A DNA stretch of 63,612 nt, filler included, from Reticulomyxa filosa (lineage: Eukaryota > Protista > Foraminifera), in NCBI GenBank assembly GCA_000512085.1. It is 23 parts of 23 records of this genome, joined end to end, with 100 filler letters (N's around TTAATTAATTAA, not from the genome) between each part and the next. Parts side by side here need not be neighbours in the genome. Positions count along the whole stretch, not along the records: positions 19,937 to 25,524 come from ASPP01003622.1; 22 more parts are not named here. One strand, 5' to 3'. Both the position numbers and the translations under genes were made by a program. This document shows positions 19,937 to 25,665 of this stretch, in pieces (within the stretch, counting starts at the first letter, position 1; every line of letters begins with the position of its first letter). The notes beneath the pieces were generated by a model. That model worked only from the letters and a program-made list of their open reading frames with translations. It was not told where the DNA came from and searched no databases.

Positions 19937-19970
<34 letters not shown>

Positions 19971-21237
19971 GCCGCCGTCACAATCACAGTCAAGACAACA
20001 AAAGCGACGACTACGAAAGCGGGGACGGTGGCGGCAGTTCAAGCCGTAATGGTCAAATGCGCATTAAAAATCTCAATAGCAATGATAGCGAAAGAGGAAA
20101 CAAAGGACCTGGTCAAGGTAATGATTTCTTCTTTGTTCCCGTTATCCAGGATGAAAAAAGAATGTCATGGATTAAAAATGCAAGAATAATTATTATACAT
20201 ACATATATTTTGAATATGCTGTATGTCATTTATGTGTATGTGTGTTTCTTGGATTGACTCTCTATGTCTTGATTCGCACATGCCAAAATCAAATCGAATA
20301 AATGGAATAACGGCAAAAAGAAATAGAGGCTGGCAGTGAAGAGGAGAAAATGCACGAAATAGAGCAATACCTTAGTAATGCAAATAACAGCATGTCGACA
20401 GACAAGAACAAGAACGAATCGACACAAGCAAAGCCGAATGTCCAGAAGCAACAATACAAAGCGCAACAGCAGCCACAGCAAGAGCGACAGCGGAAACAAC
20501 AACAACAGCCACAAGAACAAGAACTAGAATTAGAACAAGAACAAGAACAACAAGAAAAAGAGGAAATTGAAACGGTTGAAGAGTCATGGAACTTGAACGA
20601 CGACTACGAGGAGGAGTACGATAACGCCGATGAGGCCGGGGCTCACAAAGAACAGTCAATGAGCCATCAAGAGGAAGTAAAAAAAAGGAGTGCTTCGAAG
20701 CAGAACTCACCTTTTTCAGACAAAGGCGAGGCGGGTGGAGTGGTATCTCCTTTGGACCAAACTGTGGACCCCCTAAAAGCCTCCACTGGCCAAAACTCTT
20801 CTTCGTCCGCGACTTTCGAATCGAATATGAGAGAGGACGGCGATGGTGGACGTACCGTCAAGTATGACTTGATTTATCTCACGTCTTCTCCTTTGGTCAT
20901 CAAAACACTCAACGGACTAAAACCTTTGGCGCAGTTGAACATCAAGGAGGAGTGCGATCGTCTGTTTGACACTTTGAAGAGCTGCGGTCTGAGGATAAGC
21001 GTTAAGCACGTGGTAGCCACTGCTGGTGCCATGATCACCGCCTTTGTAAGCGGCTGTCGAGTCATGCACTACAGTGGCCATGGCATGCCTCAGTCTTTGG
21101 TCTTTGAAAACCCAAAGAATCTCGGTTTCGATCATTCTGTCAGTTGTGACTTGATTGGACGTGCTTGCAGAGATGCCAAGTATGGTCCCGAGCTTGTTGT
21201 TGCAAGTGCATGTCACAGTGAGGTTGTAGGTAAGTTG

Positions 21238-21274
<37 letters not shown>

Positions 21275-23456
21275 GGGGTAAGGAAAGTCCAAAAAGGAGA
21301 AGGTCAAATTATCCATAACATGTTCACAATTTTTTTTTTGAAATTTAGGAAAGGCCTTTGTGGAAGCAGGTATAAAACACGTGATCGCAGTGAAAACCGA
21401 GTTTGAGCTGAATGACGACGCGGCCAGTGAATTCACGAACCATTTTTATCACAGCTTGCTGACCGGCAACACGATATTGGATGCATTCAAGCACGCGAAG
21501 AACGCAGTGACAGGGATGCCCGGAGTGGGAAAGCAAGACGAAAAAAAGTTTGTGTTGCTCCCCATCGACCCGAATGATCGAATTCATAATGTGAAGCTGT
21601 TCCGTCCCGGCGGTCTGCCCAAAGGAGACCTGATCGATGACAGTACTCCACTGCCGCCCAACAACTTGCCTCCCCCAGTATCGAACTTTATGGGCAGGAA
21701 CGCTGACATGGTCAAACTGATCCAGCCCATTGTGGATAACGGAGTAAAAATGGTCGGACTTATGGGACCCGAAGGGGTAGGTAAATCCGCTCTGGCCATT
21801 ATGACGGCCAGATATTTATGTCATCGGTCTGCTTTCAAAGGTGGCGTGTTTTATGTCGACGTGGCCAAACTGATGCCCACGCACCCAACCTTGGAATCCA
21901 TGCTAATACATACCATGCAATTCAGCGAAAAATATCGCGACATTCCGGAAAACGAGTTCTTTGGCAAAATCCACAACTTTGATCGCCTGCTGCTTGTCTT
22001 TGATCACATTGACAAGTTTGGGGTCAAATCGGAGGAGGGCGATCTCAATCCCAGTGAGGACGAGGACGACACGGACGACAGTGGGATGGAAAGTGAAGAC
22101 GAGTTTGGACATTATCCTACGGAAGGGGGCATAAAGGGTGATCTGGCCGGGAGTGGTGGCAACAACAGTGGTAGTCGCATGTCGAAATCGCATGGCTCGC
22201 ATCGACGTATTCATCGTCGCAATGCGAAAAATAAAAGAAAGACGGAAATTTCCAAAAAAAATGCGCAAAAAACCAAAGACGCTATCAAACATTTTTTTAG
22301 TGCTGTCTTTGACTTGACTAGAAGTGAAATCAAAGTGCTGATCACGTCGACCACGAAACGACACGAGCTAAGCGAAATTCGTGGCGGGATGATGCGCTAT
22401 CACGTACTCCAGGAACTTTCCTCGGAAGATTCTGCAAAATTATTTGCACGCTTGGCCAATCAATTCCGATGGAAGGACATTCTCGCCAAACAGGATCTGA
22501 TGGCGTTGTTGGCAAACAACCCTGCCAAAATCCACAAAGTGGCTCAGTGCAAACACAACTTTGACTGCAATGACTTGGACAAAGTTATCAAAACGTACAC
22601 TGAAAAAGAAAAAATTCTTGCACGCAAATTTTTGAAAACTTCCGCTCTTGAACGCGGAGATAAACACAAAACTCATCCCAAACGAACCGGGCCCAAACGT
22701 GGAAATGACGAAAATAAAAGAAGGGCCCAGCAATTGCAAGCGCTCATGAACGAACATATCACCGACCCAAATGCGCGTAAATTATGGCTCGGCGCCAAAG
22801 GTTCAAAAACGGCAACATTCAAAGCGATGTTTGAACAGCTACGAAATAGCTTTGAGTTGGTCTCACCCTCACGTCCATTGAAAGAAGAAGATATCTTAGA
22901 GGTTTGTCAATCCTATATGGATCACAAAGGAAATTTAGTTATTGAGACCTTTGAAAAATTCTTCCGCTGGTTTGATGGAATATGTGATTTGGTTACTATC
23001 TTAAAAGATGTCTGGGTCGACACAAATCCTGTAAGGATACATGGCTTTATTGGTCGGGCAAACGCCGAAAAAAAATTACAAGTTCAGTACAGCGATGCTT
23101 CTTCCGTTCATAAAATTATAATGTTAATTTTTGCACAAATTTATATTCAAAATTATACACATAAACAAATATAAATAACTTATACAAATCCAAAGTCATC
23201 AAAACCTGGCACGTTTTTGATCCGTTTTAGCAACACTCAAACGTGCTCGATTGCAATCTCATACAGAGAGGAAGGTCCAATAGCGGTGAAACATGTTAGT
23301 GGGCAGCTGGTCAACCATAAAAAATTTTTGTTCAAAGGCGATCGAGAGGCTCACAGCTTGTCCCAAATTATCACTCGCTATGCCAAATTCACTCACTTGT
23401 ACTGTGAAACACAAGTCATACCAAAATCAGAAGTATTTTGGGGTGATGGAATTTAA
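19937..23456 (+). CDS. CHAT protease - STAND/NB-ARC NTPase - SH2 domain protein (multi-exon, 5' truncated)
   Basis: CHAT dyad MHYSGHG and VVASACHSE. Intron 21230-21348 joins in frame (EVVG/KAFVEAG). NNLPPPVSNFMGR precedes Walker A GPEGVGKS and Walker B LLLVFDHID. IHGFIGRANAEKKLQ is spliced (intron 23082-23195) to SSKPGTFLIRFS, the SH2 FLVR motif. Stop at 23456. Confidence 0.9.
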
Positions 23457-24309
23457 ATTTTTTTGTTTTTGTTCTTTTTCTTCTGAACGTTTTGCTTCAA
23501 TTGGATTTGTTTTGTTGGGATTTCTTGTTTATTTTTTTTTTTCTGTCTTTTTTTGTTGCTGTTTTGAAATTTTTTTAGAAAGACAAATTAGTGGCAGGGT
23601 TGTCGAGGACAAGAAAAACTACTGTGAACTTGTGTTGTTTCTTGTACTATTGGTATTTGGTGTTGTTTTTCTTTTTCCTCACTCCAGTTTACATTTAAAT
23701 TGCCATGATTAATCTTTGTTTTCACTATCTCCTTGTAATGTCTTTTGGTCAGTTTGTCTTGTGACTTTATATTTGAGTGTGATTATCACCTCAAAAATTT
23801 TATGATTTCCTCGTTTAGATTTTTTCTGGAACAAATAAGTCCAACGAAGTCAATTAGAGTGAAATTGTGTAGGGTGTCATTCTCCAAAAAATTGATAGTG
23901 CAACATTAGAACTTTCCAAAAATATAACAAATAATGAGCACTTGGCGGAAAAAATGATTAGAATAATATGTGGAAAGGCCAAAATATAATATTTTAATCC
24001 TTTCATTGTTTCACAAATTTTTCAAAAATTTGGAGTTGCAGTTCAAATGACTAAATAATAGGCATACAAAAGAAAAAAACTTTTGATGGATGCTCAATGA
24101 ACGGCAAAAAAAAAAGTGCATCACATACAAATCAAAATATGATACATCAAGAAATGAAAGAAAAAAAAGGTTTTTCTGAACAAAAATGAACAAACAATCG
24201 CTTGAAAAAGTGACATTATTCTTCTTCTTCTTTAACTTCAATTTTCCAAACGCTTGATAATATAGCTTTTGCTGCCTATGTTTGTATATTGTAAATTGTG
24301 ATCGTCTGT

Positions 24310-25463
24310 CTATTCTTGCTTTTTTTGTTTTGTACAAGTTACCTCGGTAATGGAACATGGACGAGTGGTGAATATATTGGCATCATTAAGAATAGCCCTA
24401 AAAATATCATGACAACGTAGTTCAGCAAGTTGTGAAATTTGGTCCGATCGACGAACATCTTGTAATATAGTTTGATCATAGCTCAATTTTCGACCAACGA
24501 ATACAACAATCAATACCAAATGTTCAATTTTGACTTTGATATTCAATCGTATTTCATTAAATTTCTCTTTGGCCTTGTGATCATCTTGAAAGGTCCAATT
24601 TGTGTTATGATTGGTGGTGGGTCCAATTTTGCTGATGATGAAATCATTTTGTTGCCGGAATATGGCATTTTGTAGTGTTTTAATAAATCGCATAGTTTTT
24701 TGAACTTTGATACCTAATGAAGGAGAGGACGGACTGTCGATTTTATTGAGGACATCACGTATGCCATAAAAATTTATTAATTCTTTTGTGACATTGGCAT
24801 CTCCTGATTGTTCTGCATTGATTTGACGGTCGAACAAGTCCACATCAACCAATGCTTGATAAAATAATTGGACAAACACAGTAAAAAATGCTTTTGCCTT
24901 AGAATTGCTCATTATGGCTTCCAAATTAATTAACTCATCCAATCGATTAACATAAGAGTTTACATTGACTTCTTTTAATTGTGCTTGGAGCGTTGACAAT
25001 TGTCGTTGGACCTTCGTCGCAAAATGTCTTCTCTCTCTTTCAATTTCGGTTGGATTGGCCTTATTTTTTTTATTTGTTCTTTAATTATTAAAACATATAT
25101 ATGTTTCTGGCTCTTTTTCTTTTAATGGCTCCAAGAGAGAGTAAAAAACTTACCACGGAGAGCCTTTTTTTGTCCCAAATCCAAAGCATCCGCAATTTCT
25201 ACATATTTATGCAAATCATAAATTTTGGCAAAAGTATTTTGACGAATTTTGGTGATTTCATGACGAACGCGGATGAGGTCAGCCTCCATTGTGTCAATCG
25301 ATGTTTGATAATCTTTAACAATAAGTTGTTGATGTTCGGAGAGGCTTTTCAATGATTTGAAAAACGTTTTCAAATCATTTGAAAATTCGTCATTGTGTGC
25401 CAACTCTTTCTTCAACTGTTTTTCATCGTTGCTATTATCACTTTGAAAAAAAAAACAAAACAT
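24310..25463 (-). CDS. Hypothetical coiled-coil protein (multi-exon, 5' truncated)
   Basis: Exons at about 25140-25445 and 24310-25060 give heptad-rich helical translations. The gene is convergent with the CHAT-STAND-SH2 gene. Confidence 0.6.
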
Positions 25464-25665
25464 AAATGTATTTCATTTACTTATTTCACATCGCCTAAAA
25501 AGGGGAAAAAAAAAAACAGAACAANNNNNNNNNNNNNNNNNNNNNNNNNNNNNNNNNNNNNNNNNNNNTTAATTAATTAANNNNNNNNNNNNNNNNNNNN
25601 NNNNNNNNNNNNNNNNNNNNNNNNAAAAAAAAAAAAAAAAAAGGAACTAAAAAAAAAAAAAAAAC

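Follow-up and report, generated by a model that had tools for sequence, protein, structure and literature searches.

What kind of protein arises where a caspase-like protease, a nucleotide-dependent switch and a phosphotyrosine-binding module appear to be encoded by one gene of a freshwater foraminifer (Rhizaria)? The question is posed by an AT-rich piece of Reticulomyxa filosa DNA, positions 19937-25524 (ASPP01003622.1), with a coding GC content of about 45-50%. This piece is part of a 63,612-nt stretch, referred to as the window, and all positions are given in window coordinates. An earlier note on the window had read a spliced gene there, joining a CHAT protease, an NB-ARC-like STAND NTPase and a STAT-type SH2 domain. 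A protein search with exon 2 of this gene returned a 100% match to the hypothetical protein RFI_03936 (P0001, a GenBank protein of 917 aa). Judged from its sequence, RFI_03936 is a protein consisting of a disordered N-terminus, a CHAT domain, a STAND-type NTPase, a helical spacer, a STAT-like linker and an SH2 domain, and belongs to a conserved subfamily. Domains were assigned on the separate exon pieces, on P0001 and on homologues that are uninterrupted at the corresponding positions.

Exon structure of RFI_03936 and its paralogue

The features of the gene are as follows; the basis of each assignment is given in brackets.

20350-21229, plus strand: exon 1, with the start ATG, the N-terminus and the N-terminal half of CHAT (open reading frame and sequence)
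20350 to about 20856, plus strand: Q/E-rich low-complexity N-terminus (sequence)
From 20857 within exon 1, plus strand: N-terminal half of CHAT (Pfam CHAT on P0001, 29 bits; His and Cys motifs align with homologues)
21067-21084, plus strand: HYSGHG motif, with the catalytic His codon at 21079-21081 (sequence)
21211-21213, plus strand: catalytic Cys codon of the SACHSE motif (sequence)
21230-21348, plus strand: intron 1, 119 nt, GTAAGT..AG, phase 1, containing long runs of T and of A (sequence; homologues; paralogue intron at the equal position)
21349-23081, plus strand: exon 2, whole extent (sequence)
21349-21605, plus strand: C-terminal half of CHAT, opening exon 2 (Pfam CHAT positions 217-267 on exon 2)
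21648-22560, plus strand: STAND-type NTPase, nucleotide-binding domain (NBD) and four-helix helical domain 1 (HD1) (Pfam NB-ARC, NACHT and AAA; AlphaFold2 (AF2) model; Apaf-1 match; Foldseek)
21765-21788, plus strand: Walker A, GPEGVGKS (sequence)
21987-22013, plus strand: Walker B, LLLVFDHID (sequence)
About 22038-22190, plus strand: low-confidence acidic/basic insert within the NTPase (AF2 model)
22515-22532, plus strand: GxP-like motif, NNPAKI (sequence)
22575-22763, plus strand: one long helix, then a basic stretch that is probably disordered (AF2 secondary structure and predicted local distance difference test, pLDDT)
22764-23030, plus strand: STAT-like helical linker domain before the SH2 domain (alignment A3; model of a homologous module; weak STAT_linker Pfam matches in relatives)
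23031-23081, plus strand: N-terminal part of SH2, betaA and alphaA (alignment with full SH2 domains of homologues); the alphaA region, IHGFIGRANAEKKLQ, closes exon 2 at 23081
23055-23057, plus strand: alphaA2 Arg codon, conserved (alignment with homologues)
23082-23195, plus strand: intron 2, 114 nt, GT..AG, phase 0, interrupting the SH2 domain (sequence; tail of the GenBank protein; paralogue)
23196-23456, plus strand: exon 3, from SH2 betaB to the C-terminus (Pfam SH2, 1.3e-08)
23208-23231, plus strand: SH2 betaB strand, GTFLIRFS, with the betaB5 Arg codon at 23223-23225 (sequence)
23454-23456, plus strand: stop codon TAA (sequence)

The frame reads through both introns without a shift, and by their coordinates the three exons comprise 957 codons, equivalent to a 957-residue protein. 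The exon model of the earlier note (20350-21229, 21349-23081 and 23196-23456, with two frame-keeping GT-AG introns) was borne out by this reading and by the homologues. Its P-loop, Walker B and SH2 arginine were all found where it had placed them, and both codons of its CHAT His-Cys dyad were read in the sequence.

The GenBank model of RFI_03936 adds 16 residues (…GKLFFFFFFFFKKKKG…) taken from intron 1 and runs through intron 2 to a stop, by which everything following the SH2 alphaA helix is lost. All homologues are devoid of these 16 residues (alignment A6), and the end of exon 2 and the start of exon 3 abut exactly when compared to complete linker-SH2 modules (alignment A3). Uninterrupted homologues are continuous over both junctions with equal spacing, including the distance from the GF to the GTF motif, and transcript-derived homologues from other Rhizaria also span both junctions without interruption. 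The GenBank gene model was rejected on the grounds that homologues lack the 16-residue insert and are continuous at both junctions. From these comparisons we conclude that the three-exon splice model is right.

The paralogue RFI_09060 (P0002; locus L001), 54% identical in the protein search with exon 2, has the same layout. An exon ending in …SACHSEVIG is followed by an intron at the equal phase-1 position, and a phase-0 intron after …AEKKLQ is followed by an open SH2 exon. At L001 7410-7422 the first paralogue intron apparently has a GC donor (ATAG/GCATGT), where the window gene has GTAAGT. The GenBank model of RFI_09060 omits the catalytic-Cys stretch and runs through the SH2 intron (L001 7330-7510 and 9199-9304). 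The SH2 exons of the two paralogues are 59% identical, and the rest of the proteins 56%. Differences between the SH2 exons fall at third codon positions in 47 cases, compared to 25 and 14 at the other two, with pN of 0.225, pS of 0.72 and dN/dS of about 0.1. This concentration at third positions and the low pN relative to pS indicate that the SH2 exon is under purifying selection. Identity of the flanking intron and 3’ sequence is only ~59%, the level of a forced global alignment of AT-rich DNA.

It is very improbable that the three-domain gene is an artefact of annotation or assembly, in which the SH2 exon would be foreign to the gene or the locus a pseudogene. Such an artefact would be consistent with the weak donor of intron 2 (CAA/GTTCAG) and with junction support at RFI_03936 that is comparative and not derived from its own transcripts. 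It is opposed by the paralogue with its equal exon order, phase and intron position, by the purifying selection on exon 3, by homologues continuous at the junction with equal GF-GTF spacing, and by the openness of all frames. Origin of the SH2 exon from another gene was rejected on the paralogue, the selection and the open frames. The two wrong R. filosa GenBank models conceal the SH2 domain, and in RFI_09060 also the catalytic Cys, and domain surveys using them would therefore undercount this architecture.

Protease, NTPase and linker-SH2 domains

The CHAT profile (PF12770) scored 29.0 bits on P0001 at a Pfam cutoff of 24, which provides the profile support anticipated in the earlier note, and 33-53 bits on homologues. 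The exon 2 piece, carrying the C-terminal half, reached 23.2 bits and thus fell just below this cutoff, while the exon 1 piece gave only a weak Peptidase_C14 match in Pfam. The C-terminal half of CHAT that opens exon 2 was the most conserved stretch in the exhaustive homologue search described below. The CHAT His and Cys are invariant in 16 aligned members and present in nearly all SH2-bearing members. P0005 from Nonionella stella, the closest relative outside Reticulomyxa and an otherwise complete CHAT-NACHT-SH2 protein, has ALGPRYANH at residues about 140-160 where others have SACHSE, and has lost the catalytic Cys motif; by its sequence it may be a regulatory or decoy paralogue that is inactive as a protease. 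In TPR-CHAT/Csx29 of type III-E CRISPR systems and in CBASS-like SAVED-CHAT, the CHAT protease is inactive until its sensor module is engaged. Likeness to these systems extends to a weak match of the PADLOC SAVED_CHAT profile to homologue P0153 (E 6e-4). RFI_03936 differs from them in having no SAVED, CRISPR or TPR partner and in being an intron-containing eukaryotic gene, and the similarity is confined to the CHAT fold.

In an AF2 model of the window’s own region 21648-22763 (pLDDT 82.3), the NTPase is built of an NBD and a four-helix HD1, followed by a single long helix and a basic stretch that is disordered. Structurally, the model is matched best by Apaf-1 (Z 15.2, rmsd 3.0, 218 residues over NBD and HD1), with alignments that end at HD1. 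The plant NLR resistosomes ZAR1/NRC match at Z 14.8, and Sr35 was also matched. The Walker A Lys and Walker B Asp are invariant in the 16 members, and relatives carry a NACHT-like Walker B of the type hhhhDGxD. The GxP-type motif has the family consensus G-N-P-x-x-I with an invariant Pro, the window version being NNPAKI. In Pfam, exon 2 scored 21.1 bits with NACHT (cutoff 26.7), and homologues exceeded the cutoffs of both NACHT (48.1 bits, P0015) and NB-ARC (46.6 bits, P0094). Comparison of an exon 2 profile to solved structures yielded marginal matches only, to AfsR and a plant NLR. The NB-ARC-like NTPase of the earlier note stands as a STAND-type NTPase with Walker A, Walker B and HD1; it is equally NACHT-like, and its model displays no winged-helix domain.

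The SH2 profile (PF00017) matched exon 3 alone at 1.3e-08 with 35.3 bits, well above the cutoff of 21, as the earlier note had expected of a profile search, and homologues scored 22-41 bits. Across the family the betaB5 Arg is invariant and the alphaA Arg conserved; a foraminiferal subgroup has RFR in place of RFS at betaB. The fold of the linker-SH2 unit was modelled on the corresponding module of P0005, the best-scoring homologue, which is 32-36% identical to the window pieces, using AF2 with alignment A3 (pLDDT 85.4). In a Foldseek search of the PDB with this model the first 34 matches were all STATs (STAT5a, STAT6, STAT1/3 and Dictyostelium STATa), aligned over about 203-210 columns with TMq 0.62, compared to about 90-140 columns for ordinary SH2 domains. 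In the ESM Atlas, the linker+SH2 supradomain was matched at TM 0.64-0.72 with 182-192 residues aligned, STAT_linker+SH2 clusters at TM 0.68-0.72, and the top matches also included plant ‘SH2 domain protein B’. From these Foldseek and Atlas matches the helical region preceding the SH2 domain is predicted to be a STAT-like linker domain, and the linker and SH2 unit described in the earlier note is indeed matched best, as a predicted fold, by the STAT linker-SH2. With the Pfam STAT_linker profile (PF21354, cutoff 27), the relatives P0171 (23.7 bits) and P0015 (17 bits) stayed below threshold, and no match was found in the window pieces or P0001. A word-index search with the linker region of P0001 found only the protein itself.

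By a stricter definition, a STAT-type SH2 domain has a C-terminal helix, alphaB’, replacing the betaE and betaF strands (PMC6895964). In the AF2 model of the P0005 module, additional strands lie after alphaB and also between it and betaD, together with short helices; by sequence, exon 3 is nearest among solved structures to the Src/Fyn SH2 domains (E 0.016). The label STAT-type holds for the predicted linker-SH2 fold, which is closest to STATs, and is uncertain in the strict sense. With animal STAT1/3/5/6, Dictyostelium STATa and Arabidopsis SH2 protein B, the family shares a linker+SH2 supradomain that superposes as one unit, and with STATs the sequence context GF-I-x-R...PGTF-L-x-RFS. Besides the strands of the model, it is distinguished from STATs by the absence of their other domains: neither STAT_alpha (coiled-coil) nor STAT_bind (DNA-binding) was matched by Pfam in any protein scanned, whether the window protein or a homologue. 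Identity of the protein as a STAT was rejected for the lack of these two domains. The window protein also differs from STATs in having no C-terminal tyrosine tail; it ends directly after SH2, as does its paralogue. Low-complexity tails with several tyrosines and a common SWNP motif follow the SH2 domain in P0006, P0007 and P0153 of a foraminiferal subgroup, and in two of these a tyrosine lies at the very C-terminus, reminiscent of the phosphorylated tail tyrosine of STATs.

Distribution of the architecture and its sister proteins

In an exhaustive HMMER search with a profile built from the two exon 2 sequences, 2490 proteins passed E<=1e-3 and 445 passed E<=1e-10; in most of them the match extended over the C-terminal half of CHAT and the P-loop region, along with a conserved inter-domain stretch. 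Pfam scans identified CHAT, NACHT/NB-ARC and SH2 in single proteins. The foraminiferal members comprise a third Reticulomyxa gene, RFI_01709, and sequences from Nonionella stella and Bolivina argentea. Among Cercozoa, members were found in Euglypha rotunda (Trinity transcripts) and in Mataza sp. D1, Norrisiella sphaerica and Partenskyella glossopodia (MMETSP transcripts). The brown algae are represented by Ectocarpus sp. 6 and Scytosiphon promiscuus, for which CHAT and SH2 were the domains that passed the Pfam threshold applied. Since several members come from transcript assemblies, the family is documented to join the three domains in a single mRNA. Many metagenome contigs, some of them very long, also encode members. 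In two contigs deposited in ENA (L002, 0.69 Mb, and L003, 1.41 Mb), intronless CHAT-NACHT-SH2 genes at L002 3001-5835 and L003 3001-5736 adjoin eukaryote-like genes encoding a CLC channel of 890 aa and a transporter of the ABCG type; their source is presumably an intron-poor protist.

Sixteen full-length members with 24-32% identity share an invariant H-x-x-G-H-G His pair, the catalytic Cys, the Walker A Gly and Lys (GK[ST]), the Walker B Asp, and the Phe and Arg of SH2 betaB. These invariant catalytic and binding columns in divergent members suggest that all three activities are under selection. The architecture is not unique to RFI_03936: it characterizes a family that is conserved across Foraminifera, Cercozoa and brown algae. 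The earlier note had raised the possibility that it was already widespread and characterised: it is widespread in these lineages, and no paper characterising it was found. Our literature search retrieved no description of a CHAT-STAND-SH2 architecture, with an earlier mention possible in the R. filosa genome paper or the SH2 review of Liu and Nash, and the sole mention of SH2 in the eLife paper of Kaur et al. concerns other proteins. Databases name members only ‘CHAT domain-containing’ or ‘SH2 domain-containing’. CHAT-STAND proteins and the STAT-like linker-SH2 are each known, and it is their combination for which no paper was found.

A hidden Markov model (HMM) of the linker-SH2 built in this study placed the module at the C-terminus of 58 out of 194 proteins (47 out of 164 in a smaller set). 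TPR repeats occupy this end in at least 21 of the 55 relatives that lack SH2 and have long C-terminal tails, as exemplified by P0174 (CHAT-NB-ARC-TPR in Pfam), while other non-SH2 relatives have N-terminal LRRs or a kinase or receiver domain. This agrees with the placement of SH2 in the sensor position by the earlier note. Individual architectures vary further: P0013/P0154 from Norrisiella sphaerica have a response-regulator receiver N-terminal of CHAT-NB-ARC, and isoform P0154 also matches the linker-SH2 HMM; LRR + protein kinase + CHAT and LRR + CHAT + NACHT occur among P0115 and P0177; and two non-SH2 relatives carry Macro domains. Compared to CHAT-STAND proteins with C-terminal TPR or LRR (sister clades, with P0174 and P0179 as examples, and bacterial or fungal CHAT/caspase-like NLR-type proteins), the subfamily of RFI_03936 has the same N-terminal CHAT protease with its His/Cys dyad, the same conserved inter-domain stretch leading to a P-loop STAND NTPase, and the same layout of effector, NTPase and C-terminal module. 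It differs in that this module is a STAT-like linker with a single SH2 domain where those proteins have a repeat solenoid, and in the lack of a winged-helix domain detected in the RFI_03936 model.

Relationships were approximated by a quick, unrooted maximum-likelihood tree of the CHAT C-terminal half and the NBD (176 columns, 90 rows), which excluded incomplete cores, short-tail non-SH2 rows and distant bacterial-type matches. All 51 SH2-bearing rows fell within one group of 56 with moderate support (SH-aLRT 85), and the SH2 label required 3 changes compared to a mean of 29.3 in shuffles. The window protein joined its paralogue and then other foraminiferal sequences. By these comparisons the SH2 proteins are one subfamily of a larger CHAT-NTPase family, with the linker-SH2 at the place of the TPR repeats of sister proteins, a pattern that fits a single event in which the linker-SH2 took over from a repeat sensor.

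In the remainder of the piece, open frames of 229 and 113 aa lie downstream of RFI_03936 on the minus strand (24310-24999 and 25122-25463). They had no usable match in Pfam or in an ESM Atlas feature search, and are probably exons of a neighbouring gene of coiled-coil-like composition. An (AAT)n microsatellite occupies the 5’ edge (19937-19969), and the region upstream of RFI_03936, to 20349, has only short open reading frames.

Proposed mode of activation

Across bacteria, plants and animals, STAND/NLR proteins are shared components of innate immunity and of regulated cell death, and follow an established logic of effector, nucleotide-binding oligomerization domain (NOD) and sensor. From this logic, and from the activation of caspase-fold proteases by proximity, we infer a candidate mechanism in which the RFI_03936 protein is an NLR/apoptosome-like switch triggered through its SH2 domain by a phosphotyrosine motif, to which we assign a probability of roughly 0.45. 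The SH2 domain together with its linker would bind a phosphotyrosine motif on another protein, and this engagement would release or nucleate NTP-dependent oligomerization of the NTPase. CHAT domains would thereby be brought together, become active and cleave substrates; the giant multinucleate cell would likely use this in responding to stress, in self/non-self reactions or in cell death. The Apaf-1/CED-4 apoptosome and plant NLR resistosomes provide the parallel, as the best structural matches of the NTPase model over NBD and HD1 and, in concept, by nucleotide-dependent oligomerization activating a caspase-fold protease through proximity. They also differ from RFI_03936: caspase-9 is recruited to Apaf-1 via CARD, whereas the protease of RFI_03936 is fused in cis; the sensor is WD40 or LRR in place of SH2; and sequence similarity is marginal.

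Several findings weigh against this switch. The structural score of the NTPase with Cdc6/ORC (Z 14.9) is a statistical tie with Apaf-1 and plant NLRs, and Foldseek mixes NLRs with generic AAA+ matches, namely proteasomal ATPases and p97. A winged-helix domain is a normal part of the STAND switch, and none was recognisable between HD1 and the linker in the AF2 model. NB-ARC scored 23.4 bits on exon 2, just under the Pfam cutoff of 23.5, and no meaningful match was obtained with the PADLOC models for bacterial defence proteins. The catalytic Cys is lost in some members, such as the Nonionella protein P0005, and both junctions of RFI_03936 rest on comparative evidence. Phosphotyrosine binding, oligomerization and proteolysis are inferred, and tyrosine kinases are not established in foraminifera.

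The phosphotyrosine ligand could instead lie within the same protein family, in a homotypic use of SH2 like that of STATs or Src, which we consider unlikely. Reciprocal SH2-phosphotyrosine contacts would aid oligomerization, or an intramolecular contact would lock the protein, and the switch would be triggered by a kinase or phosphatase with the protease as its own target, not by a separate ligand protein. Such a use is suggested by the proximity of the linker-SH2 module to STATs, for which dimerization through reciprocal SH2-phosphotyrosine contacts is established (PMC6895964), by the tyrosine-containing SWNP tails of P0006, P0007 and P0153, and by an acidic DDYEEEYD stretch in the N-terminus of the window protein. 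The window protein and its paralogue, however, have no tail after SH2, and the tyrosines that come into question belong to low-complexity regions of poor conservation. We regard it as similarly unlikely that SH2 serves for targeting to phosphotyrosine-marked complexes or membranes, with activation by other means such as the nucleotide state or the N-terminal region. Most characterised SH2 domains act in recruitment, and with no winged-helix and only a short helical spacer in the model, an autoinhibitory contact between sensor and NOD is not evident. The position of SH2 where sister proteins have TPR sensors, and the conservation of module and NTPase together as one subfamily, argue against a mere targeting role.

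Less likely still is binding of a different ligand by the SH2 fold, such as phosphoserine/threonine or an unphosphorylated or acidic motif, which would remove any tie to tyrosine-kinase signalling. SH2 domains of other specificity are known, for instance that of Spt6 for phosphoserine/threonine, and the RFR variant at betaB of the foraminiferal subgroup would be consistent with such a specificity, as would the status of tyrosine kinases in these lineages, where they are not established. The invariant betaB5 Arg and the conserved alphaA Arg and G-T-F-x-x-R-x-S context are, in contrast, typical of phosphotyrosine-binding SH2 domains, and Dictyostelium serves STAT SH2 signalling by tyrosine kinase-like enzymes in the absence of canonical tyrosine kinases (PMC4758236). 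Extended from RFI_03936 to the subfamily, the phosphotyrosine-triggered switch becomes more tentative: in SAR (Rhizaria and brown algae), a phosphotyrosine-gated, apoptosome-like protease with the linker-SH2 replacing the repeat sensor might allow tyrosine phosphorylation to license oligomerization-dependent proteolysis, possibly in cell death or immunity.

To our knowledge, STAND/NLR proteins nearly always sense their ligands by direct binding to a repeat solenoid. A single SH2 domain at the sensor position would tie the STAND switch to a post-translational mark and lead from kinase signalling directly to a caspase-fold protease, a signalling logic for which, if true, no counterpart has been described. 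Functional SH2/phosphotyrosine signalling would then also reach into Rhizaria and brown algae, lineages in which it has hardly been explored. For the linker-SH2 supradomain, the family would constitute a second context besides STATs and plant SH2 proteins, and evidence that this supradomain existed outside transcription factors.

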